Source: Cyanophora paradoxa CCMP329 (lineage: Eukaryota > Plantae > Glaucophyta). From it: a stretch of 39,910 nucleotides of DNA. The notes below the pieces were generated by a model. That model ran no database searches. It was not told the DNA's origin and was given only the letters and a program-made list of their open reading frames with translations. The stretch is taken from the NCBI GenBank assembly GCA_004431415.1, contig QPMI01000364.1:1-39910 (forward strand), read 5' to 3'. Within the stretch, counting starts at the first letter, position 1. The number at the start of each line of letters is the position of its first letter. The translations under genes and the position numbers were made by a program. Below, piece after piece: positions 1,538-32,850 of the stretch.

Positions 1538-3200
1538 CTACCTGGCGGGGGCGGGCGCGAGGCACTGGCGGTCGATGGCGGTGCCGTTGACGAGGCGCTT
1601 CCAGGTGCAGAGGGCGACGGGCGGGGCCCCGGGGGCGGGCCGCCGGGGCCACGCGAGGTCGATCACGCGGGCGCCGTGGAGGAAGCCGCCGGCGGGCGTG
1701 AAGCGCTCGGGCTTGTAGCTGTCGAAGCCCGTAGAGCGGCCGTAGCAGAGCAGGGGCGGGGGGGCGCCCGGGGCGGCCTCGGGGGCGGGCCCCGGGGCGC
1801 ACCAGTCGTTGAGGTGGTCGTGGCCGCAGGCGATGAGGGCGGGGCTGATCTGGCGGGAGAGAGCCCCGTAGAGGCCCTTGAAGCGGAAGGCGGGGCAGAC
1901 CTCCTCGCCCTGCGTCCCCACGCAGGCCGGCCCCGCGCACGCCCCCCGGTACTCCAGCAGCGGCATGTGCATCATCGTCACGTTGACCGCCGTCGGGGGC
2001 ACCGGCGTGGGCACGCTGGCGCCGTCGGCGAAGCTGCGGGGCGGGCCGGCGGCGGCGGAGGCGCGGGGCCGGGCCTCCTCCTCGAGGAAGTGCTTGGCCT
2101 GGACGAGGCGGCCGGAGCGGGCGCAGGCGCCGGCGAGGTGGAGCCACTCCTCGACCTCGGCGGTGTGGTCGCCGAGGGAGAGGACGGAGGAGAGCCAGGC
2201 GCCGTCGTCGGAGACGTCGAGGAGGAAGAGCATGGCGTCGGCAGCCGCCGAGGGGCCCAGCACGCGCACCACGTGGTGGAACGGCGGCGTCACCTTCCGC
2301 ACTGTCCCGCCCCGCCTCGCACGCGCGCACCGGCGGGCTGGCGGGGAGGGCGCTCGCCTGCAGTCTCGAAGGTCCTCTCGATGAAGGCAGCGGCAGCCTT
2401 GCTCAAGCCGCCTTCTCTGCGGCCGCAGGCGCCGCCTTGGTGAGGGGGCGGGGGGCGGGGGGCGGGTGGCGGGGCGGGGCGGCGGGGCGCGGACGCGTCG
2501 TGGTTGCCGAAGAGGACGGTCCAGCGCATGCCCATGGAGTACATGGCGCGGCCGAGCTGGCGGAGGACCTCCCGCGGGTCGCTGCTCTCCCCCCCGAAGA
2601 GCGTGTCCCCCGTGAAGACCACCAGGTCCGGGTCCTCCGCCTGCGCCAGCGCCTCCAGCGCCTTGAACGAGAGCTCGTCCGCGCAGAAGTCCCGGCCCCT
2701 GTCCGCCCCCCGCAGGCCCGCGATCCCCGACTCCCTGCTCGGCGTCTTCTTCGCCGTCTGGGGGCACGCCTTCCCCGTAGTAAGATGCAGGTCCGTAATC
2801 TGCAGGATGCGGAACTCCGCCGCGTTCTCGCCCGGCGCGTCCGGCACCCGCGCGTGCATCTCCACGTACGGCACTAGGTACTGGTAGTTAGCGACGGCGA
2901 GCTGCGAGCGCCACAGCGGCGCCGCGGAAACCGCTTGCCAGCCGCACCTTCCGCACACGATGAATGAATGCCGAGCGGAGCCGGTAGCATGTTCAACACA
3001 GTCCGCAGCGCGAGGAGGACGCACGCGGCGCCTGCGGGTCGGTCACTGATTGAGACGCACCTACGCACGCAGCGCCTGCGACGCTCGCTCATCGCACCTA
3101 CAAGCGCTGCGACACCGCCCTGTGCCGCCTTTTTTCGCCGCGCTGTGGAGGGTTCTGCGGCCGTCGGCGAGCCCGACGAGCGCTGCCTGTATCGAAGCAT
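1538..3200 (-). CDS. Calcineurin-like metallophosphoesterase, PAP14/28/29-DCR2-like, with N-terminal hydrophobic segment
   Basis: Motifs FRILQITDLHL, DLVVFTGD, WTVLFGNHD, MMHMP, GHDHLND, LCYGRSTGFDSY and GARVIDL. At least two introns, one with a GC donor. 5' exon structure is approximate. Confidence 0.85.
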
Positions 3201-16921: not shown

Positions 16922-17389
16922 TCTTTTTCTTCGGATCCCAAAGCGGTCGTCTGTGGTACGCTAGCTAGGCAGCTTGGGGCGGTATACCATCTTCGTAGCA
17001 CAGATCTCGTAAATTCGTCGCTAGGTAGTAGTGCGCATGTGCGTAGTGCAGCAGCTTATTCCTAGGCGCAGTAATCAGGTTCCTGCGGTATTCCGGAACT
17101 GGCAGTGTAAGCTTCTTGAGACCCCTTGCCTCAAGCGAGAGCTTGCGAGCTAGCCAGTCGTCGCATGCGCCTCTTGCTTGAGAAGCTAATCCCGCGCACT
17201 TCACGCGGCATGATGTGAGCTGCTAGCTGGAACATCTGTCATGGCGCAGTTGCAAACCGAACAGAAACAGGGGACACGCACAAATTAGTGCACGCAGCTA
17301 GCTGGCGGAAGCTGCGGCACAGGACCGGGCGAGGGCTATGCACGCAAGATGAGATCAGAGCTGAAGGGATCGCACGCAAGATGAGATCA

Positions 17390-17669
17390 GGGGCGTGCGC
17401 GGGGCCGGCCTGCGTGGGGACGCAGGGCGAGGAGGTCTGCCCCGCCTTCCGCTTCAAGGGCCTCTACGGGGCTCTCTCCCGCCAGATCAGCCCCGCCCTC
17501 ATCGCCTGCGGCCACGACCACCTCAACGACTGGTGCGCCCCGGGGCCCGCCCCCGAGGCCGCCCCGGGCGCCCCCCCGCCCCTGCTCTGCTACGGCCGCT
17601 CCACGGGCTTCGACAGCTACAGCATATCCAGGCCCTGCTCGCGGCGAGGCCGTCAGCGCGAGCGAGTGC
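17390..17669 (+). pseudogene. Chimeric copy of two local gene fragments (phosphatase exon 1945-1714 joined to 990-941)
   Basis: 17390-17621 is the near-identical reverse complement of 1714-1945. 17620-17669 matches the reverse complement of 941-990 at 48/50. The junction overlaps by 2 nt (CA). Confidence 0.9.
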
Positions 17670-17815
17670 GCATGCCAGCGGTACCGACGCAGCTAGCTCT
17701 TGCGTTGTCCGCAGCTAGCGTGCATGTGTTATCAATGCGCAGAAGGGATCGCTCCATGAAACCAAGCCGCGCCCGGGTATAGTGTCCAAAGCCGCGCACG
17801 AAGGGCGCAGTCACC

Positions 17816-20800
17816 ATGAACGGCCGAGCGCACGACGGCGCGGTGGCCGTCCAGCGGCCCGCGTTCCTCGCCCGGGTCTTGCCCGCATTGAGCAGAAAGA
17901 AGCTGCAGTGGGAGCCGGACAGCGCGGATGGACCGGCGCACGCGCACGACGAGCTCCATGCGAGCATGCCGAAAGTGCTTAATTGGTTCGGTGCGTCGCG
18001 CTTGCTCGACCTCCGTGGCCGCCGGCGCCGTCGCGGCTCACACGAGCGCAGATCTGATGTGTTTCGGCATGTGCGACCGAGCTATCTGATTGATCTACAC
18101 CGCGCTAGCGCATGCTGTCCTTCGCGCCGGCACCTGACGCCCCTTCACAGAGGCGGGATAATCGGTGCCGGGGTCTACATCCTCAGCGGGAAGGTGGCTG
18201 CGCAGGTGCGCATGCGACCGCACCGCGCCGCGCCGCGCTCGCGGATGCGATCCGCCTGACCGACTGCCGCAGACGGCGGGGCCGTCGGTCGTCGTGCGCT
18301 CCGCAGCTTAGCTTTGAGCGTGCCCTGCAGCTGGGTCCTGACCTCTGATCAGATCTCTTTCATCTTTGCTGGAGTGTTTTGTATCTTCTCCGGACTCTGG
18401 TCCGCTGTCCCCCTGTCTGCCGCAGTGCGGCCTGCATGCCACTCACGCAGGGGCGCAGCTGTGCGCCGTCCGGGCCCGGGGTCCCGCTCGCCGCCCTACA
18501 GCGTGCGGCGCCCAACGGCTCGCTCGCCTCCACGCAGACGCTGAGTTCGGATCACGTGCGGCCGGGTCCAAGGGCAGCGCCGGCAGCGCGTACAGCTACG
18601 CATACCTCAGCCTGGGGGAGTTCCCCGCCTGGATCATCGGGTGCGCGCCCGCAGCGCCGCCCCTCCGCTCCTCTTTCAATCCACGGGCTCGCCGCGCAGC
18701 TGGGATCTCGTGCTGGAGTCCGCTGCCGAGCCGCCAGCGCGCCGCGCAGCTGCCGCCCTCACCGCAGGCCGCGCAGATACACGGTCGGAACCGCTGCCAT
18801 CGCGAAGGGTGCGCAGTCTCAGTCCCTGCCCTCACGCCCACGACCTGAAGTGCTCCGCAGGCTGGTCGTACTACTTCTGGTGACCCCACGCCCCCACGCC
18901 GTCCCCGGACCCACCTGACGCCCTCGCCAAAGCGATTTCATTGACGCGCTGGGAGCAAATCTTCCGAAGTGGTTACAAGAAGGTCGCTCCGCCCTCGGAC
19001 CCGCCCCCTCGGCACTGCTTTCTTGACGGATCTGCGACCGCTCGGCAGGTGCCGCGATCGGGGACGCGAAGTACTGGAACGCGAACCTGCTCGCCGCGCT
19101 GCTCATCCTCGTGCGCCGCGCCGCGCCCACCGCGGACCTCCCGCGCGGCCGACCGGGGTTTGGGCGCAGGCGCTGACGGGCATCCTTTGCTTCGGGATCA
19201 AAGAGTCGGCGTGGTTCTCGAACGTCATCGTCTGCACAAAGGCCAGCCGCGCACCGGTCGCCGGCGGCTGCCGGCGCGCACTGAGCGTCGCGCAGATCGT
19301 GACGCTGCTCATCGTCGTGGGCGCCGGCATGGGCCTCGTGAGGCGGGAAAACTATGAGCCCTTTGTGCCTCCGGAATTCGGCTGGATGGGCGCCTGGAAT
19401 GTGCGCGCCGTGGCGTCTTTTTGGATCATTCCTTTCTGGCGCCCTCGCCGGTCCTTATTCTTACATTGCCTCTTAGGGAGCCGCAACCGTCTTCTTCGCC
19501 TACATCGGGTTCGATTCGGTCTCCGTACGCTTCACCAGACCAAACTAAAGCACGACGTGCTAACTAAGCCCAAAAAAAGGTCGTCGCCGAGGAGGCCAAG
19601 CGGCCCTCCCGCGGTGCGCCCCCCCCCCCCCACACACCACCATCGGGCGCCCGACGGCGAGCCGGTCCCGCAGACATCCCGCTTGGCATCATGGGGTCGC
19701 TCGTGCGCCCGCGCCCCTGCCGGCCGCCGCGCACCGCCTGGGGTGCCGACCCCCGGGGCAGCTGATCTGCACGGTGCTGTACGTGGTGGTGGTGCTCACC
19801 CTCGTGGGGATGGTCAAGTACAGCGCCATCGACACGCGCGCGCCCCTCGTCGCCGTCTTCCGCGTCCGCCGCCCCCACCGCCCGCCCCGCCCCTCCGGCC
19901 CGCCCCGGCGCCCCGGGGGGCCGGCGCTGACGGGGCGTGCAGGCGCACGGGATGAAGTGGGCGCAGCTGGTGGTGGGGGTGGGGGCCATCTCGGGCCTCA
20001 CGAGCACGTGCCTGAGCACCATGATGCCCCAGTCCCGCATCTTCCTCGCCATGGCCCGCGACGGCCTCCTCCCCCCCGTCTTCGGCAAGGCCAGCGCCCC
20101 GCCCCTCCTCCCTCCTCCCCTCTCCTCCCTTTTTGGCCCTGCTCCGCCCCCCCCCCCCCCCCCCCCTCTCACCCCCACACACACCCCACACACACACCCC
20201 ACCCCCCTCCCCAGGCCCTGCTCCGCGCCACCCCACCCTGCCCCACCCCGCCCCCTCCGCCCCGCCCCGCCCCGCCCCGCCCCGCCCCGCCGCCCCGAGT
20301 CGCCGGGCCGACGGGGGCGGCAGGTGAACCGGCGGACGGGGGCGCCGGTGCACGGGACGCTGATCGTCGGAGGCTTGTGCGCGGCCATCGCCGGCCTCGT
20401 CGAGATGAACATCCTCGCCGACGTCTGCCCTGCCCCGCCCCGCCCCGCCGACTCTTCTGATGGAGCCCCAGGCGGTCTCCATCGGGACCCTCTTCGCCTT
20501 CAGGCGCGCCAGCCGCCAACCCGTCCCCGCAGCCCGCCCGCTCCCACTTTCTCATCCTCGTCTAATCCTCATCGTCTGCAGCGTCGTCTGCACCGGCATC
20601 CTCATCCTCCGCTACCAGGCCCGCCCCTGCCGCCCCCCCACAGCGCCGCGGGGCGCGAGGGGCGGGGCAGGGGCCGGGGCGGGAGGGCGGGGGCGTGCTG
20701 GGCGACGCCCTCTTCCTCTACGCCGCCCTCCTCGTCTTCTGCTTCACGGCCGGCAACCCCGACTGCCCCCTCGCCCTCCGCGTCGCCCTCGGGTCCCGCC

Positions 20801-21830
20801 CCCGCCCTCCAGCCCGTCGTCGCCCCCGCCCACGGCGCCCCCGAACCGGCCGCGCAGCCTCCTCTCGGGGGGCGCCTCGCTGTGGACGACGGTGCGCATC
20901 TGGCGCAAGGAGCAGGCCCCCGTCCCCGCCAAGTTCGTCTGGTGAGCTGCCCGCCCCGCGCGACGCCCCCGGGCAGCCGCGGGGGTGACGGCGGGCAGCC
21001 CGCTGGTGCCGCTGGTGCCGATCCTGGGGATGCTGGGGAACGTGTACCTGATGACGCGCGTCGGGGGCGAGGCCTGGGTCCGCCTCGTCATCTGGTTCCT
21101 CCTCGGTGCCCCCGCCCGCCCCCGGACACCGCACCCCCGGGGCCCTCAACCTCCGCAGGCCTCCTCGTCTACTTCGGCTACGCGGTGCAGCACTCGAAGC
21201 TCGCCGCGGGGCCGGCCCCCGCCCCACTCCGCGAGCTCCCCGGCGTCACGCCCGATGGCGATGAGGCCCTCTCGCCCCCCAAGGCCCCCGCCGAGGCGAA
21301 GGACGACGACGACGACGAAGCGCAAGGAAGCGGCGCGCCCCGGGCCCCCCTCGCCGCCCCCGGCGGGGCCGGGCGCGCCCTCCCGTCGCCGGCTGCGGGG
21401 GCCGCCGGGAGGGGGGAGGCGCACGCGGTGCCGCGGGCGCACGGCGTGGAGCGCGGCAGCAGCGGGAGCGGCAGCTCCGCGCGCTCCCGGGGGGGCGACT
21501 TCGAGCTGGCGCACGCGTCCAGCCTCCACCTGCGGTGCGCGCGCCCGCGCCCTGCAGGCGTCCCGCCCTTGCTAGCGCTCGCAGCTTACACCCCAGACGA
21601 GCAGGACCGCGGGCCCCACCCCCCCGTCCCTCGTCGACGTCACGCAGCTCGACGCGGCCGGACACGCCCACTCCGCCAGCGCCGCACCGGGATCCCCCTC
21701 GGGCCCTGCCGCCGGCGCAGCGTCGGCGTCGGCGTCGCTAGCACTGCCGGCGGCAGGCCTCGCGGGCGCCGGTGCCCCTCAGACGCATGGCGCCGGCCAG
21801 CCGCAGGAGTACAACCCCTTCCTCGGCTAG
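17816..21830 (+). CDS. Cationic amino-acid transporter (APC/CAT, SLC7-like), >20 exons including micro-exons; 3' end approximate
   Basis: Spliced motifs DLMCFGI|GGIIGAGVYILSG, AGPSVV|ISF, GLC|YAEFGSR, GSAYSYAY.SLGE, IGWDLVLEY, FFAYIGFDSV, AEEAKRP, PQSRIFLAMARDGLLP, SIGTLFAF, CPLVPLVP and VYFGYAVQHS. Confidence 0.92.
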
Positions 21831-22052: not shown

Positions 22053-23264
22053 ATGTCCGCTTCGGTTCGTGCGCCGTGAAGCCTGCGAGCTTCTGCCCGT
22101 GACGAATCGCTCAAGCCTCTGTGCAGCAGCCGAAGCGCGCCATCTCGCGCGATGAATGGGAGAAAAAGCTGTCCGCCGTGAAGATTAACAAAAGGTTCGC
22201 GCCAATTGCGGGGGCACGCGTTCGACTGCGCTGACCGCGGTGCCCAGCGACCTGAATCGGCTGGTGATGAATTACCTCGTGATCGAGGGATACAAGGACG
22301 CCGCGGAGAAGTTTCAGCAGGAGTCCGGCACGGATCGGCTCGGCAAGACACGTGCGCGTGGCCCGGAAGTCCCTGCCGCTCGCTACGGCTGACCGCGTTT
22401 CCGCTGCCACAGAGGGCGTCGACTTGGACTCTATAGCAGATCGGATGGCTATTCGAGGCGCCATCCAGCGCGGAGACATTCTGGAGGCCATCGAGCGCGT
22501 GAACGACTTGGACCCGGAGGTGCTGACCCTGTCCTTCATTTTTGGCCGAGTGCTAAGGCGTTCCTGCGCAGATTCTGGATACGAATCCGCGACTATACTT
22601 CCATTTGCAGCAACAGCGGATGATTGAGCTCATCCGTCAGAACAAGATCCAAGAAGCGCTCGACTTCGCCCAAGAAGAGTTGGCTCCGCGCGGCGAAGAA
22701 AATGTAAGAACTTTTCCCCCTTCAGATTACTCGATTGGCCAATGATGATTTTATGTTGGGAATCTCTCTGACATATCCTGAAGTAAACCTTTTATAACAC
22801 CACTTAGGCCTACCCCCTCGCCCCTCCCCCACGGAGCCGTGTAGGAATTCCGTTCCTAACTGTTCTCTTGGTGCTTTCTCTCGCGCAGACTGCATTTCTG
22901 TCTGAGTTGGAGAGAACAATGGGCCTCTTGGCGTTCGAGGATCCGACACAGTCGCCGCTCGCGGAATTGCTCGACAACTCGCAGCGGCAAAAGATGGCCA
23001 GCGAGCTGAACGCAGCCATCCTCACAAGCCAGTGCCAGGAGAAAGGCGAGGCCATCCTTTTGTGTCGTGCTCGTGGCCGCCATTAACTCGCTTCGCGCCA
23101 CAGATCCGAAGCTTCCCGTTCTGCTGAAGATGCTCATCTGGTCGCAGAACCAGCTCGACGAGAAAGTCACGTATCCTAGAATCAACGATTTGAGCTCCGG
23201 AGCGCTCGACGTCGGCTCCGCGGCATTCGATCCCATGCAGGTTACATCTGCGAGCATTGTATGA
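22053..23264 (+). CDS. GID8: GID8/TWA1 (LisH-CTLH-CRA) subunit of the GID/CTLH E3 ligase
   Basis: [17 protein letters not shown]|[28 protein letters not shown]...[12 protein letters not shown]...LDPE|[22 protein letters not shown]...[12 protein letters not shown]|...[11 protein letters not shown]...[15 protein letters not shown]...[20 protein letters not shown]. Confidence 0.95.
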
Positions 23265-23471
23265 GATCTTTTTCTTTTGTTGCACAGACACCTTGTACTT
23301 TCCACCTTGTACTTTCCTTTCTTGTACAGATATAGACTTAGGAGTTTCAAATGCACAGTAAAGTGACCATCCGCGCCCCACCTTCCTGCTCGCCGCCCCG
23401 CGCACCACCTTCCCGCTCGCCGGGAAAAGAATTGCGTTTGATTTGCGCGATCTAAAAATTAGACCGATGCT

Positions 23472-24155
23472 CTACAAAACGTATTTGTGGAAGAAGCGGC
23501 CGACACCAGCAGAGCAGACGGCGTTGACGAAAGTGAGGAAGACCAAGAGGCCCAATACGGGTTGCACGGTTGCTATCCGACGCTGCGGGTCGTCTACGGA
23601 GGACATATACAGGACGGTGATAAGCGAGAGGACGAAGAGGAGGAAGGCGGAGATCTTGAAGGGGGCGCTGGGGGTCATCTTCGGCCGGCGCGAGCTGGCG
23701 AACCCGCACAGCACGAGAATGGCGAACGCGCTGAAAGGAGATAGAGGGATCGTGCCGCCCAGCGTACGTGCGAACAGGTCCCAGCATGCTGCCGACACCA
23801 TCCAGTTGAAGTCGTTAACTCCCATCGTCAGGTGCACCAGCAGCGTTGCGAGGCAGACGAAGAACACGAGCGCATCCGATATCTGCCATGCACGGGCGTC
23901 CACTTGCTCCGGGAAGTCCATGAAGGTATTCCAAGGGCGCGAGTTGATCCAGAGCGTGAAGGAGTACGGGCTGCTAGCCGCCGCCGCGGCCGCTAGCTTT
24001 GCCTGGTTCTTGGTGCGCACGCGCGCGGCCGCCGGAGCTCCAGGAGCGCCTGGCGCGCCGGCCGCCAAGCTCCCGCTCGCTTGCGCTGATTTGGCCGCGC
24101 TGGGCTCCGCATCGTTTAGCACGCCGGCGCCGGCGCTCTTCTTCTTCTTGCCCAT
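23472..24155 (-). CDS. Intronless multi-pass membrane protein of unknown function (copy 1)
   Basis: ATG at 24155 (MGKKKKSAG...). Four hydrophobic segments: ALVFFVCLATLLVHL, FSAFAILVLCGFA, ISAFLLFVLSLITVLYM and VLGLLVFLTFVNAVCSAGV. Confidence 0.65.
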   Translation of the reverse strand: MGKKKKSAGAGVLNDAEPSAAKSAQASGSLAAGAPGAPGAPAAARVRTKNQAKLAAAAAASSPYSFTLWINSRPWNTFMDFPEQVDARAWQISDALVFFVCLATLLVHLTMGVNDFNWMVSAACWDLFARTLGGTIPLSPFSAFAILVLCGFASSRRPKMTPSAPFKISAFLLFVLSLITVLYMSSVDDPQRRIATVQPVLGLLVFLTFVNAVCSAGVGRFFHKYVL

Positions 24156-24448
24156 GTCTGGGCCTCTGAGCGCCGTTGCGATTCCTCCCTCCTGGAGTCG
24201 ACCCCCTGCAGCCAGAGTCCTGCTGGCTTTTTTTTCAGCCTCCCCGGCCAGCAACCCAGGTGCATACTTAAGTGCATGCTAAGCGCAAGCTGCTGTGGGC
24301 GGATGCATGCGCCGGAGGAGCGCGAAATTGGTGGTGTCAGTTAGCACATTGCCTGGCTGGTGGTTCAGCCAGCCGACCGCCTGCGCGGGGAGGGGGTGGT
24401 CGCGCAAACGCTGCTCAACAAGTCGGGCCCACGGCGCTCACGGACGGG

Positions 24449-26227
24449 ATGCATGCGCAAAGACCACTCCTGCCCCGCGAGCACCAGCGCTCGGCGGGCG
24501 TCTCGCGGGTGCCCGTGACGCGTGCTGCGACCCTCCGAGACATAGCCATCCGCGCCTCCGAGCTGTCAGTGATCGAAGGTAACGTGGCTCGCGCGTGGAC
24601 GAGCGCCCCCTGAGGCGCGCGCAGAGACGCAGAAGCAGCGGGAACAGAGGAGGCTTGAGGAGCAGCGAGAGGAGGAGGAGGTGCGCTATCGCGTAGCCGA
24701 CCCGCGCCGCCGACGTCTTACGTGGGGCCGCAGCGGAGGCGAGCTGTCCGATCGGCGGACAGGCTCTCGCTTCTATTCGACAGAGTGGCAAACCCCGCTC
24801 CCGACGCCAGACCGGCGAAGCAGAAGATGGTCCCCTCCTACGCGCGCCTCCTCGAGAGAAAGCAAGCCGCCGAGGCCGGCCCCGCGCCATCGCGGCCCCG
24901 CCCTCCCATCCGAGGCGGCGGGGGCCGCCGGGCGGGCCGCGGCCCCCGCCAGCTCCCGCGCGGGCGGTGCACGGCAGCGCTGCGGATGTGCCCACTTTGC
25001 CGCCCGAGGTCTCTTCGCGGGTGGCGGGGAGCGCGCCGAAGCTCTCCGCCTCCTCCTCGGCGCCGCAGCTGCCGCGGGGGGCCCTGGCGCCCCCGACGCT
25101 GCACCCCGCCGCCTCCACCTCCCGCCTCCCGCCCCCCTCCTGGCGCCTCCCCGCGGATGCGCCGGCGGAGGCGACTGCTGTCGCGGGGAGGCCCGTCGCC
25201 ACGGCCCCCTCGCAGCCACACGGCCCGCCGCGGGAGGCGAGCCCCGCGCGGCCGGCCTCCGCGGCGGCGAGGCGGGCGGCGTCACCGGAGACGCCGCCAG
25301 CGAGCGCGGCGGGGCCGAGCGTCGCGTGGGGCCCCGGCGTGGCGCCGCCGTCGCCGCCGCCGGTGGCCGGGGAGGCGGCGCTGGCGCCCTATCTCGCGCG
25401 CGCCCCGCTCCCCGACGGCGCCTTCGGCATCTACCGCAGCGAGCTCGCCGGCGGCTCGCCGCCCGCGACTCGCCGGGAGGCCGAGGCGGCGGGCAGCGAG
25501 GGGGAGCGCTCGGGGGAGGAGGAGGGGGGGGACTTGCTGGCCCTCTCCCCGCGCTCCGCGATGCCCACCCGCCGCTCCGCCGCCCCCGCGCACGCGCCGC
25601 CCGCCCCCACCGCCCGCTCCCTCCTCGCCACCTCGCGCTCCCTCGCCGCCCTCCACGCGCCCCTCTCCCTCGCCCGGCCCGGTGCGCCGCCCCACCGCCG
25701 GCCCTGCCCCGCGCCGAGGCATCCGCGCAGGCTCGCCGGAGGCGGCCGCTGTGGATGCGGCGGAGCAGCAGCGCCCGTCTACGGCGCCCCGGGCGGCGGG
25801 GCCGCGGGCGGCGTGGCGGGAGCGGCCGGGGAGCGCGGCGTCGCAGCCGCCGGCGGGGGCGCCGTACGGGCGGTGCGGTGGCGGGGCGGGGCCGGGGGGC
25901 GGCACGGGGCCGGCCCCGCCGTGGATGGCTTCCTCGTCCTCTCCCACGACGGCAGCTTCAGGGTCCGCTGGGGCGCGCCGCCCCCCGCCCCCGCCGCCCT
26001 CGCCCGCCCCGGCTTCGGCTCCCGCTCCTCCTCCGCCCTCGGCTCGCGCTCGCCCTCCGCCCCGGGGTCGAGGTCCCCCTCGAGCTCCGCCCTCAACTCC
26101 GGCGCCCGCACGCCCGCCGCCGCCTCCGGCCACCCCGCCGGCCCACCCCCGCCCCGCCCCTCGCCCTCCTCCGCCGCGCCCTCCTCGGCAGCTCCGCATC
26201 CAGGGCCCGCCTTCCGCCCCCTCGTGA
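24449..26227 (+). CDS. Hypothetical Pro/Ala-rich protein with a short N-terminal coiled coil (copy 1)
   Basis: MHAQRPLLPREHQR...AETQKQREQRRLEEQREEEE|...KMVPSYARLLERKQAAE, with typical gtgcgc/gccggc...gcag introns. An extra C near 24610 breaks the frame here but not in copy 2. Confidence 0.4.
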
Positions 26228-26567
26228 TTGCTTTTCGTGAGGCTTTTTCTCTTTTTCTTGTCTGCATTTGCAGCAGTTGGATGGCGCCGCGGCGCCCGCT
26301 GTTTTTTGGGTCTGATAGTCTCATCTCGCAGTTCGCAACGCCATGTGTTTTATTGCTGAGAATGATTGCGCAGAGTGTCACAGTGTTTTTTCCGATGCTT
26401 TTTCGACAGAACAGTTGAGCATACTTACAGTAGTGCTGCCGCAGTGCGGTGCAGGAGCTCTTTTTCAGTGGATTGGATATTTAGAGCGATGCATTTACAG
26501 TCGTACAAGAAACTTGAAGCGAGGAGGCGCCAGCCTCCAGGGGCCCCGCCGCAGGGTTCGCCTCCGC

Positions 26568-27370
26568 TCACGTGGAGGCCCTGCTCGTGCTCGAGCGCCG
26601 AAAGGCCGTCACATCGAATTTGTACGCCTCCGGCGGCGGGGGCGCAACCTTGAGGCTCTCCGAGCGCGGGATCGAGCGCTGCGCGCGCCGCTCGACGGCC
26701 GGACGGGGCGGGGCGGGGCGGGCGGCTGCGTACACGGCGCTCGACCTCCTCGATGCGGGACGTGGCCGCCGCGACGATCTCGTCGGCCGAGCGCGGCACG
26801 CCCGCCACCGGCAGCCGCAGCGCCGCTGCCCGCTGCGCCGCCGCCGCCGCCGCCGCGCGGGCCGCTCGCGACGCCCGCGTCCGCTCCAGCCAGTGCTTGA
26901 CCACACGCTGCGCGCATGCGGCTCGCGCGGGAGGGCGAGAGCGCTCGGCAAGCGCGCGGCCGCGGCGCACCTGGATGCGCCAGACGCTGTATTGCACAGA
27001 CATGCTCTGCGACCTGGAGACGATCCTCTTACGCTCCAGGTCCAGCTTCATCGTACTCGAGTGGATGATTGAAAGGCCTTCCGCAACCTGCGCCGAATGC
27101 GCAGGTCAGGCCTTCAGGGAATCCGGTGGTCAGCTCCTGCTGCCCTGCTTATGCATGATCCCCTGCCGCGCAGTGCGCTGCCCCGCCCAATCCCGCTCCC
27201 ACTATAACGTTCTGAGCTGATGTACTGAGCTGGTGTGAGCTGATGTGCTGTTGTGAGCTGGAGGTCCGCAGTCTAGATCTAGACCCGCGCGGGCGGAGAT
27301 GCATGGATATCCTGACCTGCTGCTCGCGCCTCCTGTTCAGCTCTTGCTCCTCTTTTTCCATCTTCTCTCC
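26568..27370 (-). pseudogene. 3' fragment of the IQ-motif gene, cut at the duplication junction
   Basis: Essentially identical to 31100-31901 but lacks the 5' part, which exists only beyond 31901. Confidence 0.6.
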
Positions 27371-27431
27371 CCCACGGAGCCGTGTAGGAATTCCGTTCCT
27401 AACTGTTCTCTTGGTGCTTTCTCTCGCGCAG

Positions 27432-27807
27432 ACTGCATTTCTGTCTGAGTTGGAGAGAACAATGGGCCTCTTGGCGTTCGAGGATCCGACACAGTCGCCG
27501 CTCGCGGAATTGCTCGACAACTCGCAGCGGCAAAAGATGGCCAGCGAGCTGAACGCAGCCATCCTCACAAGCCAGTGCCAGGAGAAAGGCGAGGCCATCC
27601 TTTTGTGTCGTGCTCGTGGCCGCCATTAACTCGCTTCGCGCCACAGATCCGAAGCTTCCCGTTCTGCTGAAGATGCTCATCTGGTCGCAGAACCAGCTCG
27701 ACGAGAAAGTCACGTATCCTAGAATCAACGATTTGAGCTCCGGAGCGCTCGACGTCGGCTCCGCGGCATTCGATCCCATGCAGGTTACATCTGCGAGCAT
27801 TGTATGA
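27432..27807 (+). pseudogene. 3' fragment (last two exons) of GID8 in duplication copy 2
   Basis: Identical to 22889-23264. The duplication begins inside GID8 intron 22704-22888, so the 5' exons are absent. Confidence 0.8.
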
Positions 27808-28014
27808 GATCTTTTTCTTTTGTTGCACAGACACCTTGTACTTTCCACCTTGTACTTTCCTTTCTTGTACAGATATAGACTTAGGAGTTTCAAATGCACA
27901 GTAAAGTGACCATCCGCGCCCCACCTTCCTGCTCGCCGCCCCGCGCACCACCTTCCCGCTCGCCGGGAAAAGAATTGCGTTTGATTTGCGCGATCTAAAA
28001 ATTAGACCGATGCT

Positions 28015-28698
28015 CTACAAAACGTATTTGTGGAAGAAGCGGCCGACACCAGCAGAGCAGACGGCGTTGACGAAAGTGAGGAAGACCAAGAGGCCCAATA
28101 CGGGTTGCACGGTTGCTATCCGACGCTGCGGGTCGTCTACGGAGGACATATACAGGACGGTGATAAGCGAGAGGACGAAGAGGAGGAAGGCGGAGATCTT
28201 GAAGGGGGCGCTGGGGGTCATCTTCGGCCGGCGCGAGCTGGCGAACCCGCACAGCACGAGAATGGCGAACGCGCTGAAAGGAGATAGAGGGATCGTGCCG
28301 CCCAGCGTACGTGCGAACAGGTCCCAGCATGCTGCCGACACCATCCAGTTGAAGTCGTTAACTCCCATCGTCAGGTGCACCAGCAGCGTTGCGAGGCAGA
28401 CGAAGAACACGAGCGCATCCGATATCTGCCATGCACGGGCGTCCACTTGCTCCGGGAAGTCCATGAAGGTATTCCAAGGGCGCGAGTTGATCCAGAGCGT
28501 GAAGGAGTACGGGCTGCTAGCCGCCGCCGCGGCCGCTAGCTTTGCCTGGTTCTTGGTGCGCACGCGCGCGGCCGCCGGAGCTCCAGGAGCGCCTGGCGCG
28601 CCGGCCGCCAAGCTCCCGCTCGCTTGCGCTGATTTGGCCGCGCTGGGCTCCGCATCGTTTAGCACGCCGGCGCCGGCGCTCTTCTTCTTCTTGCCCAT
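28015..28698 (-). CDS. Intronless multi-pass membrane protein (copy 2)
   Basis: Translation identical to 23472-24155. Confidence 0.6.
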   Translation of the reverse strand: MGKKKKSAGAGVLNDAEPSAAKSAQASGSLAAGAPGAPGAPAAARVRTKNQAKLAAAAAASSPYSFTLWINSRPWNTFMDFPEQVDARAWQISDALVFFVCLATLLVHLTMGVNDFNWMVSAACWDLFARTLGGTIPLSPFSAFAILVLCGFASSRRPKMTPSAPFKISAFLLFVLSLITVLYMSSVDDPQRRIATVQPVLGLLVFLTFVNAVCSAGVGRFFHKYVL

Positions 28699-28991
28699 GT
28701 CTGGGCCTCTGAGCGCCGTTGCGATTCCTCCCTCCTGGAGTCGACCCCCTGCAGCCAGAGTCCTGCTGGCTTTTTTTTCAGCCTCCCCGGCCAGCAACCC
28801 AGGTGCATACTTAAGTGCATGCTAAGCGCAAGCTGCTGTGGGCGGATGCATGCGCCGGAGGAGCGCGAAATTGGTGGTGTCAGTTAGCACATTGCCTGGC
28901 TGGTGGTTCAGCCAGCCGACCGCCTGCGCGGGGAGGGGGTGGTCGCGCAAACGCTGCTCAACAAGTCGGGCCCACGGCGCTCACGGACGGG

Positions 28992-30760
28992 ATGCATGCG
29001 CAAAGACCACTCCTGCCCCGCGAGCACCAGCGCTCGGCGGGCGTCTCGCGGGTGCCCGTGACGCGTGCTGCGACCCTCCGAGACATAGCCATCCGCGCCT
29101 CCGAGCTGTCAGTGATCGAAGGTAACGTGGCTCGCGCGTGGACGAGCGCCCCTGAGGCGCGCGCAGAGACGCAGAAGCAGCGGGAACAGAGGAGGCTTGA
29201 GGAGCAGCGAGAGGAGGAGGAGGTGCGCTATCGCGTAGCCGACCCGCGCCGCCGACGTCTTACGTGGGGCCGCAGCGGAGGCGAGCTGTCCGATCGGCGG
29301 ACAGGCTCTCGCTTCTATTCGACAGAGTGGCAAACCCCGCTCCCGACGCCAGACCGGCGAAGCAGAAGATGGTCCCCTCCTACGCGCGCCTCCTCGAGAG
29401 AAAGCAAGCCGCCGAGGCCGGCCCCGCGCCATCGCGGCCCCCGCCCTCCCATCCGAGGCGGCGGGGGCCGCCGGGCGAGCCGCGGCCCCCGCCAGCTCCC
29501 GCGCGGGCGGTGCACGGCAGCGCTGCGGATGTGCCCACTTTGCCGCCCGAGGTCTCTTCGCGGGTGGCGGGGAGCGCGCCGAAGCTCTCCGCCTCCTCCT
29601 CGGCGCCGCAGCTGCCGCGGGGGCCCTGGCGCCCCCGACGCTGCACCCCGCCGCCTCCACCTCCCGCCTCCCGCCCCCTCCTGGCGCCTCCCGCGGATGC
29701 GCCGGCGGAGGCGACTGCTGTCGCGGGGAGGCCCGTCGCCACGGCCCCTCGCAGCCACACGGCCCGCCGCGGGAGGCGAGCCCCGCGCGGCCGGCCTCCG
29801 CGGCGGCGAGGCGGGCGGCGTCACCGGAGACGCCGCCAGCGAGCGCGGCGGGGCCGAGCGTCGCGTGGGGCCCCGGCGTGGCGCCGCCGTCGCCGCCGCC
29901 GGTGGCCGGGGAGGCGGCGCTGGCGCCCTATCTCGCGCGCGCCCCGCTCCCCGACGGCGCCTTCGGCATCTACCGCAGCGAGCTCGCCGGCGGCTCGCCG
30001 CCCGCGACTCGCCGGGAGGCCGAGGCGGCGGGCAGCGAGGGGAGCGCTCGGGGAGGAGGAGGGGGGGGACTTGCTGGCCCTCTCCCCGCGCTCCGCGATG
30101 CCCACCCGCCGCTCCGCCGCCCCCGCGCACGCGCCGCCCGCCCCCACCGCCCGCTCCCTCCTCGCCACCTCGCGCTCCCTCGCCGCCCTCCACGCGCCCC
30201 TCTCCCTCGCCCGGCCCGGTGCGCCGCCCCACCGCCGGCCCTGCCCCGCGCCGAGGCATCCGCGCAGGCTCGCCGGAGGCGGCCGCTGTGGATGCGGCGG
30301 AGCAGCAGCGCCCGTCTACGGCGCCCGGGCGGCGGGGCCGCGGGCGGCGTGGCGGGAGCGGCCGGGGAGCGCGGCGTCGCAGCCGCCGGCGGGGGCGCCG
30401 TACGGGGCGGTGCGGTGGCGGGGCGGGGCCGGGGGCGGCACGGGGCCGGCCCGCCGTGGATGGCTTCCTCGTCCTCTCCCACGACGGCAGCTTCAGGGTC
30501 CGCTGGGGCGCGCCGCCCCCGCCCCCGCCGCCCTCGCCCGCCCGGCTTCGGCTCCCGCTCCTCCTCCGCCCTCGGCTCGCGCTCGCCCTCCGCCCGGGGT
30601 CGAGGTCCCCTCGAGCTCCGCCCTCAACTCCGGCGCCCGCACGCCCGCCGCCGCCTCCGGCCACCCCGCCGGCCCACCCCCGCCCCCGCCCCTCGCCCTC
30701 CTCCGCCGCGCCCTCCTCGGCAGCTCCGCATCCAGGGCCCGCCTTCCGCCCCCCTCGTGA
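28992..30760 (+). CDS. Hypothetical Pro/Ala-rich protein (copy 2, several 1-nt indels relative to copy 1)
   Basis: Duplicate of 24449-26227. Confidence 0.35.
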
Positions 30761-31099
30761 TTGCTTTTCGTGAGGCTTTTTCTCTTTTTCTTGTCTGCAT
30801 TTGCAGCAGTTGGATGGCGCCGCGGCGCCCGCTGTTTTTTGGGTCTGATAGTCTCATCTCGCAGTTCGCAACGCCATGTGTTTTATTGCTGAGAATGATT
30901 GCGCAGAGTGTCACAGTGTTTTTTCCGATGCTTTTTCGACAGAACAGTTGAGCATACTTACAGTAGTGCTGCCGCAGTGCGGTGCAGGAGCTCTTTTTCA
31001 GTGGATTGGATATTTAGAGCGATGCATTTACAGTCGTACAAGAAACTTGAAGCGAGGAGGCGCCAGCCTCCAGGGGCCCGCCGCAGGGTTCGCCTCCGC

Positions 31100-32850
31100 T
31101 CACGTGGAGGCCCTGCTCGTGCTCGAGCGCCGAAAGGCCGTCACATCGAATTTGTACGCCTCCGGCGGCGGGGGCGCAACCTTGAGGCTCTCCGAGCGCG
31201 GGATCGAGCGCTGCGCGCGCCGCTCGACGGCCGGACGGGCGGGGCGGGGCGGGCGGCTGCGTACACGGCGCTCGACCTCCTCGATGCGGGACGTGGCCGC
31301 CGCGACGATCTCGTCGGCCGAGCGCGGCACGCCCGCCACCGGCAGCCGCAGCGCCGCTGCCCGCTGCGCCGCCGCCGCCGCCGCCGCGCGGGCCGCTCGC
31401 GACGCCCGCGTCCGCTCCAGCCAGTGCTTGACCACACGCTGCGCGCATGCGGCTCGCGCGGGAGGGCGAGAGCGCTCGGCAAGCGCGCGGCCGCGGCGCA
31501 CCTGGATGCGCCAGACGCTGTATTGCACAGACATGCTCTGCGACCTGGAGACGATCCTCTTACGCTCCAGGTCCAGCTTCATCGTACTCGAGTGGATGAT
31601 TGAAAGGCCTTCCGCAACCTGCGCCGAATGCGCAGGTCAGGCCTTCAGGGAATCCGGTGGTCAGCTCCTGCTGCCCTGCTTATGCATGATCCCCTGCCGC
31701 GCAGTGCGCTGCCCCGCCCAATCCCGCTCCCACTATAACGTTCTGAGCTGATGTACTGAGCTGGTGTGAGCTGATGTGCTGTTGTGAGCTGGAGGTCCGC
31801 AGTCTAGATCTAGACCCGCGCGGGCGGAGATGCATGGATATCCTGACCTGCTGCTCGCGCCTCCTGTTCAGCTCTTGCTCCTCTTTTTCCATCTTCTCTC
31901 CAAGCAACTCCGCGTACACCATCCTCGCCTGATTCGGGCTGAGCTTTCGAAGATAGGTCTGTACAACCCTCCGGACCTTTGCCCTGCGTATGAGGGCTTG
32001 AATACGCGCTGCCGCCGCATGGACACCCTTCAGTGGCGGTGGGGGCTTGGGTCGGTGCATCTTCTGCAGAAAATTTGCGCCGACGGAGGCGTCTACGGAG
32101 ACCGCGATTGCTTGCGCAGCACGGACAATTCGCTCCTCACGCAATTGGTCAACAGCGCCGTGCGCCATCGCGCTGCCCGATTTGCGTGCCTCGTCCGTCG
32201 GGTCCAGGCGGCGTCTCTGCAATGCCTCGTCCGTCGGGTCCAGGCGGCGTCTCTGCAATGCCGACTGTCTTACGCTGCTTCCAGCAAAGAAGACTTTCAG
32301 AAACTTGAAGAAAGCTGTGCTGCTGTCCGAAGCTGTCCGCTGGTCGCCGAGGGGGGTACGTGGCAGAAGATCGATCTCCAGCTGGATATCGATGTCCCGC
32401 AGCACAGCAGGAGACGCGCGTGACGCGGCGGCGTACGCGCAAACACTAGAAGCGCTGAAGGTAGCGCACTCTTCCGCAGAACTCTCGCGGCCCTTTCAAG
32501 TTTGTTCACAGCGTTCCCGTGGTACAGGCGGTTCAAGATAAATCGCTCTCGCTCCAGGCAGACATCGAAGTGTTGGAAATCGAGTGCGCCTCTTTGCGGC
32601 GCCGGCGCGACAGCGCGGGCGCCGACGTCGAGCGCGACGTTTTCGTGCTCACCGCGTACCGCCCGTTGCTTCTTCTTTTCCCGGCGTGCCTCATCCTCGG
32701 CGTCCTTGCGCTTTTCAACCACCCGCTTGTCGACGTCTCGGCCAGCTCAGGGGCCAACTCTGACCGCTTCGAGGAGAGCCTCTTCTCTCTCGTCATCAGC
32801 ATCTATAGTCTGCTCTTAATCCGCTTCTGCTCTTCCACGGTATAGTCGTC
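31100..32850 (-). CDS. IQ-motif / coiled-coil protein, possibly disrupted at the 5' end
   Basis: IQ-like AAARIQALIRRAKVRR and spliced WRIQ|RVVKHWLERTR; charged helices EKRKDAEDEARREKKKQR. An in-frame TGA at 32747-32749 and an apparent frameshift near 32815 leave the start unresolved. Confidence 0.45.
32187..32262 (+). repeat. 36-bp in-frame tandem duplication (ALQRRRLDPTDE x2 on the minus strand)
   Basis: tgcctcgtccgtcgggtccaggcggcgtctctgcaa occurs twice exactly. Confidence 0.9.

Follow-up and report, generated by a model that had tools for sequence, protein, structure and literature searches.

How can a gene encode a conserved run of residues when the two exons that carry its halves give a stop codon upon direct joining? 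This question is raised by a 39,910-nucleotide (nt) stretch of DNA from the glaucophyte Cyanophora paradoxa CCMP329 (contig QPMI01000364.1, positions 1 to 39,910 of the forward strand; hereafter the window). The window has a GC content of ~70%, and a plus-strand gene near 18 kb, which is predicted to encode a cationic amino-acid transporter, is split in it into numerous tiny exons. An earlier note on this DNA had proposed that, between two of these exons, the bases CT at positions 18459–18460 constitute an exon of their own. Judging from the sequence comparisons described below, we consider it highly probable that CT is a real internal exon of 2 nt in the C. paradoxa transporter gene.

The CT dinucleotide between exons 6 and 7

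Exon 6 (18353–18399; plus strand, as are all features of the transporter gene given below) encodes ISFIFAGVFCIFSGL followed by TG, the first two bases of a Cys codon, and its end (..GGA CTC TG; end string ..GGACTCTG) is followed by gtccgc. Exon 7 (18538–18640) is preceded by ccacgcag, begins with AC GCT GAG TTC (start string ACGCTGAG..), where AC is the end of a Tyr codon, and encodes AEFGSRAAGSKGSAGSAYSYAYLSLGEFPAWIIG. When 18399 was joined straight to 18538, the result was TGA. Between the two exons, CT is placed in the context GGGGCGCAG/CT/GTGCGCCGTC (gcgcag/CT/gtgcgc; slashes mark splice junctions), and its inclusion completes the Cys codon (TGC) with C and starts the Tyr codon (TAC) with T, giving TGC TAC GCT GAG TTC, or C-Y-A-E-F. 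The flanking units, intron A (18400–18458, 59 nt) and intron B (18461–18537, 77 nt), are both of the GT-AG type, and their lengths fall inside the 49–80 nt range of the 23 reference introns of this gene, outside of which 138 or 178 nt would lie. The earlier note had described the site in the same terms: its positions and strings at 18399, 18459–18460 and 18538 all proved correct when the sequence was checked, the lengths of both introns were confirmed, and translation reproduced both the TGA upon direct joining and the CYAEF motif with CT. Examined as an ultra-short internal micro-exon (≤3 nt), CT has canonical AG/GT flanks, is needed for the frame, contributes to conserved residues, lies on the first-ranked splice path and is flanked by viable introns.

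The published model of the transporter gene, P0001 (EukProt tig00001525_g9239.t1), is built differently at this point. This model was found by a word search in which a stop-free frame of the window served as the reference and in which only a true 50-residue exon scored; it is 100% identical to the window exon, and exact spliced mapping placed it on the window with 26 exons and 25 introns. At the site in question, P0001 joins 18399 to 18578 by means of one 178-nt intron (18400–18577), such that ..GGACTCTG is followed by CGCCGGCAGC.. and the protein reads ..FSGLC/AGSAYSY... Exon 7 is thereby shortened to 18578–18640, a truncated version that we reject. CT is bypassed and the frame is kept, while 14 residues (YAEFG..KGS) that are encoded by the spliced mRNA of a related alga are absent. 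The remark in the earlier note that gene predictors miss exons of this size is borne out by this model, which skips CT and loses the 14 residues.

The ortholog from the related alga, P0174, is a full-length protein of 649 residues that is encoded on a fully spliced contig of 2,255 nt (L115). Three independent contigs read ..TTCAGTGGACTATGCTATGCTGAATTTGGC.., which corresponds to FSGLCYAEFG. BLASTP alignment of P0001 with P0174 was colinear, with 65% identity across the first 377 aligned positions and one 14-residue gap in P0001 that lies exactly opposite YAEFGARAAGSKGS. The other interruption of this alignment is a proline-rich stretch at P0001 residues ~451–525 that is absent from the ortholog. 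We then compared the exons of the window with the ortholog singly; joined translations served the frame check and the path ranking only. Positions 18353–18397 matched P0174 residues 111–125 with 12 of 15 residues identical, and positions 18540–18641 matched residues 128–161 with 30 of 34 identical, without a gap and with a lineage-specific spacer of 11 residues included. The residues in between, Cys126 and Tyr127, must therefore come from TG (18398–18399), two further bases, and AC (18538–18539). With TG and AC fixed around a Cys-Tyr pair, the first missing base can only be C or T and the second only T, and CT fits this requirement.

The residues concerned are widely conserved, since Cys precedes Tyr in 142 of 156 homologs and the complete pentapeptide CYAEF is present in 112 of them. 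A fragment match, P0141, has an 11-residue spacer between YAEF and GSAY, as in the window exon, and this spacer measures 7 residues in 155 of 156 other homologs. The cluster of P0141 and a sister cluster, to which P0174 on L115 also belongs, were assembled from the transcriptomes of algae in culture (source label mmetsp; two JGI samples).

The splice signals around CT were scored with position weight matrices derived from 23 reference introns of the transporter gene, the sites under test being left out. The donor at 18400 (CTG/GTCCGCTG) reached 8.8 bits, which is the 98th percentile of the GT sites in the window, and the acceptor ending at 18458 (..ACTCACGCAGGGGCGCAG/) reached 9.4 bits, the 99th percentile of the AG sites. 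For the donor at 18461 (GCT/GTGCGCCG) the score was 6.7 bits, as compared to a leave-one-out median of 6.1 for real donors, and for the acceptor ending at 18537 (..CGCCTCCACGCAG/) it was 6.5 bits, inside the range of real acceptors. These scores are typical of, or above, those of the 23 reference introns. The annotated acceptor ending at 18577 (GGCCGGGTCCAAGGGCAG/) scored 3.4 bits, the 78th percentile of the AG sites in the window. In addition, intron A contains a branch-like CTCAC motif whose A precedes the 3′ splice site by 13 nt, a feature shared by 12 of the 23 reference introns.

Furthermore, we enumerated all paths with zero, one or two introns of the GT/GC-AG type in the region 18353–18640 that were in frame and stop-free. 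Among the resulting 3,839 paths, the one through CT came first on two measures, namely alignment to the ortholog (score 222, with 210 for the next best) and summed site score (31.4, with 29.1 for the next best). The annotated path, with its acceptor at 18577, ranked 810th by homology. Other ways around the two-base exon were considered and rejected. A single intron at 18381–18537 (..AGVF/YAEFG..) is in frame, but it drops seven conserved residues and ranked 312th. A larger micro-exon starting at 18426 or 18451 requires an intron of 26 nt or breaks the frame, and moving the donor by 2 nt, which leads to Trp-Tyr, requires a non-canonical CC donor. A recursive splice site, that is, an exon of zero length, also fails, because the two bases between AG and GT are required by the frame.

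Taken by itself, the pattern CAGNNGTGCG is no rarity: it was found twice in the whole window, with 3.5 occurrences expected. The expectation by chance was then assessed by first-order Markov simulation of 100,000 introns of 138 nt. The arrangement AG-YT-GT occurred anywhere in 2.2% of the simulated introns and with both sub-introns of at least 45 nt in 0.8%; upon addition of modest site scores the share was 0.1%, and scores as high as those observed were reached in none of the 100,000. On both strands of the window, 18459 was the sole AG..GT case with a gap of 2 nt and both sites at ≥6 bits. With gaps of 1–6 nt and the same threshold, there was one further case, of 1 nt, on the minus strand. 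The full two-intron signature (donor, 45–100 nt, acceptor, exon of ≤8 nt, donor, 45–100 nt, acceptor) was present at three places in the window, namely at 18459 and at two places on the minus strand.

Altogether, the interpretation of CT as a 2-nt exon, as offered in the earlier note, is supported by the ortholog, the strength of the splice sites, the lengths of the introns and the ranking of the paths. Only the joint removal of two intron-like units yields the conserved protein.

Competing explanations and the order of intron removal

Conceivably, the published model could be right, in which case a single 178-nt intron would be removed and the YAEFG-coding stretch would be intronic. Such an intron is in frame, stop-free and bounded by GT and AG, and it was the choice of a genome annotation pipeline that made use of RNA-seq hints (PMC6704402). 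However, the 40 nt that are skipped by the published model encode YAEFGSRAAGSKGS in the correct frame, and the whole exon is 88% identical to the ortholog mRNA. The intron would end at the weak acceptor of 3.4 bits, at 178 nt it would be more than double the 49–80 nt of the 23 reference introns, and the resulting path has the low homology rank given above. In addition, two strong acceptors with a strong donor between them would be left unexplained within the supposed intron. The same model reads through a probable intron at 20090–20323, which argues against close guidance of this model by transcripts. We regard it as very unlikely that the published model is correct at this site.

Alternatively, the gene could be broken or the assembly wrong, such that the 138 nt between exons 6 and 7 would be a single intron, the frame would have been lost through an indel in a pseudogene or through a polishing error, and CT would be coincidental. 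Long-read assemblies, to which the present one belongs (PMC6704402), can hold small indels, and the transcript searches of the available collections gave no match. Against this, the gene has more than 25 other exons, all of them intact; they follow the ortholog colinearly, the frame is nowhere broken, and a single intron of 138 nt would be an outlier in length. Intron A, moreover, has the modal length of 59 nt and a full set of signals (donor, branch-like motif and acceptor), and the coincidence that a broken gene would require has a probability of at most 0.1%. This explanation appears hardly credible to us. Lastly, the CT exon could be real and yet optional, with inclusion or skipping turning the output of transporter on or off. 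The TGA that results from direct joining would suit such a switch, and the 1-nt exon of plant VPS55 is indeed used alternatively in some lineages (PMC8831610). However, the sequence gives no sign of regulation, and the splice sites are strong and typical, which makes an optional exon highly improbable.

A number of observations weigh against a 2-nt exon and need to be set beside the evidence in its favor. An exact scan of a metagenome and metatranscriptome collection for the 26-nt micro-exon junction gave 0 matches, in a collection that may lack Cyanophora RNA. A control scan with the junction of exons 7 and 8 gave 112 matches, and all of the comparable ones were at most 58% identical over exon 7. 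The matches of the control scan read like GC-rich bacterial homologs that share the codons for AWIIGWDLV, so the control was not specific and is uninformative on Cyanophora RNA. Searches with protein fragments, in three length ranges, returned no near-identical fragment besides the annotated model, and these collections, too, may lack Cyanophora RNA. Intron B is without a strict branch motif, as are 11 of the 23 reference introns. The published model, which comes from a pipeline with RNA-seq hints (PMC6704402), took another acceptor. Formally, this model bypasses 18459–18460 while keeping the frame, which in a cDNA would, by the terms of the earlier note, speak against its proposal, but the model is a prediction and not a cDNA. 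Finally, the related alga is known at this site from its mRNA alone.

If CT is indeed an exon, then the cell would remove two GT-AG introns of ordinary short length (59 and 77 nt) that lie two bases apart. The joining of ..CTC TG, CT and AC GCT GAG.. would then encode Leu-Cys-Tyr-Ala-Glu-Phe, the conserved motif of the transporter family. Each intron would be recognized across itself, a mode known as intron definition, which is to be expected since the introns of this gene measure 49–80 nt while its exons can be as short as 18 nt. With only 2 nt between the intron A acceptor and the intron B donor, the factors that recognize these two sites would overlap, and the two introns would most likely be removed one after the other. 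For splicing in the cell we thus infer a removal in two steps, rather than a simultaneous one. The donor context GCT/GTGCGC would remain unchanged from −3 to +8 in either order of removal, since the last base is G in exon 6 as well as in intron A. Since skipping of CT would lead to an immediate TGA, its inclusion would be obligatory for production of the full-length protein.

The transporter gene and its surroundings

The host gene was delimited at 17816–21830 on the basis of the P0001 mapping, Pfam searches and the structure matches of P0174. It contains at least 27 introns and ends with a TAG stop codon at 21828–21830. Pfam identified AA_permease_2 (PF13520, 2e-44), AA_permease and AA_permease_C (PF13906, 1.8e-16) in P0001, and the comparison of P0174 with solved structures gave GkApcT (5oqt, 4.9e-106), plant CAT4 (6.6e-95) and human CAT1 (1.9e-83). 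By these sequence criteria the host gene is a predicted cationic amino-acid transporter gene of the CAT/APA type. Its 23 reference introns in the published model range from 49 to 80 nt, with 59 nt as the commonest length (5 times), and the coding sequence is interrupted about once every 70 nt. Very short exons are normal in this gene, as shown by confirmed ones of 18, 19, 19 and 21 nt. For the genome of C. paradoxa as a whole, in which genes bear names of the same form as that of P0001, a GC content of 67.6% was reported, with 9.2 introns in the average gene and introns averaging 86 bp, and the gene models were produced with BRAKER1/Augustus and RNA-seq hints; the authors state that manual curation is needed (PMC6704402).

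The 5′ part of the published model looks over-extended. There (17381–17855), its first exon measures 285 nt from position 17381 and is followed by a doubtful 189-nt intron without counterpart in the ortholog. A simpler start, and the one that we favor, is offered by the ATG at 17816, which shares the frame of the second exon. Within the gene, the published model reads through a proline-rich stretch of 234 nt (20090–20323), which P0174 lacks (VFGK/ISKRFG). Its length is a multiple of 3 and it holds no stop codon. The stretch begins with AAG/GCCAGCGCC, nearly identical to the GC donor of the confirmed GC-AG intron at 19242, and it ends with ..GGCGGCAG/GTGAAC, where the acceptor scores 6.3 bits. 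Probably, positions 20090–20323 represent an unspliced GC-AG intron, which would be a second error of the same gene model. An internal ..CCCCAG/GCCCTG at 20214/20215 would divide this region into 125 and 109 nt, with a donor of only −2.6 bits. GC donors are used in 3 of the 25 introns of the published model (19242, 20504 and 20619), which is an unusually high share, and all three of these GC-AG introns agree with the alignment to the ortholog.

Partly spliced transcripts of the related alga (L001:604-668, L002:1-162 and L116:1-113) expose three of its intron positions. The intron at PSVV/LSF has the same position as the window intron 18294–18352, and the remaining two are offset by 2 nt and about 5 nt from the window introns at 18718 and 19242. 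Such near-coincident positions suggest intron sliding or independent gain close to the same sites.

The introns at 18400–18458 and 18718–18776, both of 59 nt, have the start GTCCGCTG in common and a similar end, CTCAC.GCAGG..GCGCAG. An introner-like origin was considered for the introns of this gene and rejected after an all-vs-all alignment, in which the similarity of this pair was the best at 0.339, not above the maximum of 0.373 in shuffled controls. Introns A and B are mutually unrelated (similarity 0.034). Similarity among the introns of this gene gives no hint of a recent copy-and-paste origin.

Elsewhere in the window, a micro-exon candidate at 19178 on the minus strand is antisense to the transporter gene and was rejected as unsupported. 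The same applies to a 7-nt candidate (GCGCCGC) at 3019–3025 on the minus strand, for which the frame is lost in the simplest model. This candidate, at the 5′ end of a minus-strand gene whose product resembles a metallophosphoesterase (..FRILQITDLHLTTG..), has a strong acceptor of 9.9 bits, a strong donor of 7.0 bits and intron-sized flanks. Downstream of the transporter gene, the window contains a near-perfect tandem duplication of ~4.54 kb, with copies at about 22815–27350 and 27358–31900. Six blocks of 280–300 nt are 99–100% identical between the copies, with a start-to-start spacing of 4531–4543 nt, and the next gene after the transporter, which is LisH/CTLH-like, has its 3′ end where the duplication begins.

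Relation to known micro-exons and consequences for Cyanophora

Recursive splice sites are AG/GT ratchet points that typically divide very long introns and of which nothing is kept in the mRNA. The CT site resembles them in that an acceptor is followed almost at once by a donor within a seemingly single intron, and in that removal would take place in two steps. In contrast to recursive splice sites, two bases would be kept here, these bases are required by the frame, and both introns are of ordinary short length.

A closer parallel is the 1-nt exon of Arabidopsis APC11, which was proven by cDNA sequencing and by mutated reporter constructs (Guo and Liu, 2015; PMC4674806). It shares with the CT exon the sub-codon length, the internal position, the canonical AG/GT flanks, the need for it in the frame and its absence from the annotation, and sequential, intron-defined removal was argued for APC11 as well. 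The differences are that the APC11 exon measures 1 nt and lies in a 422-nt interval with far longer introns in a land plant, whereas the present exon measures 2 nt and is flanked by introns of 59 and 77 nt in a glaucophyte; furthermore, the APC11 exon is proven by cDNA, while the CT exon is proposed from sequence comparison. The 1-nt exons of plant VPS55, together with a catalog of plant micro-exons of 1–15 nt, have support from RNA-seq and RT-PCR (Yu et al., 2022; PMC8831610), and a 1-nt exon was proposed for CYP621A of Fusarium (PMC12940212). As in the present case, these exons were found via conserved residues that were absent from the annotated proteins, misannotation being the rule, and they are supported by the conservation of the protein in evolution, although other lineages and other genes are concerned.

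At the protein level, the transporter resembles cationic amino-acid transporters of the SLC7 CAT subfamily/APA family (GkApcT, 5OQT; plant CAT4; human CAT1), with which it shares the Pfam domains, AA_permease_C at the C-terminus among them, as well as the motifs CYAEF and GSAY. Unlike these transporters, the window gene and P0174 hold four extra residues between CYAEF and GSAY (11 versus 7 in 155 of 156 other homologs).

Sub-codon exons as such are already known, with 1-nt exons in plants and fungi; what is notable here is the lineage and the very short length of the flanking introns. In the literature, we found no description of a 2-nt exon and nothing on micro-exons in Cyanophora, with searches that depended on wording and that do not prove absence. 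With some reserve, we lean toward the view that C. paradoxa splices this 2-nt exon constitutively, that it is the first sub-codon exon in a glaucophyte, and that it belongs to the tail of a genome-wide population of tiny exons that the published annotation has missed systematically.

Confirmation by RNA would allow the correction of a transporter model that lacks 14 residues of a conserved segment. It would also mean that the protein sets of this alga, which are widely used for studies on the origin of plastids, can hold errors that no standard predictor fixes. Sub-codon exons would then reach a third, deeply separate lineage beyond land plants and fungi, in which the very short introns imply that recognition must run across introns and not across exons. 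The site would represent a compact natural substrate of ~190 nt for the order in which adjacent introns are removed when an acceptor and a donor are 2 nt apart, and thus a natural system for how two spliceosomes handle overlapping splice-site footprints.

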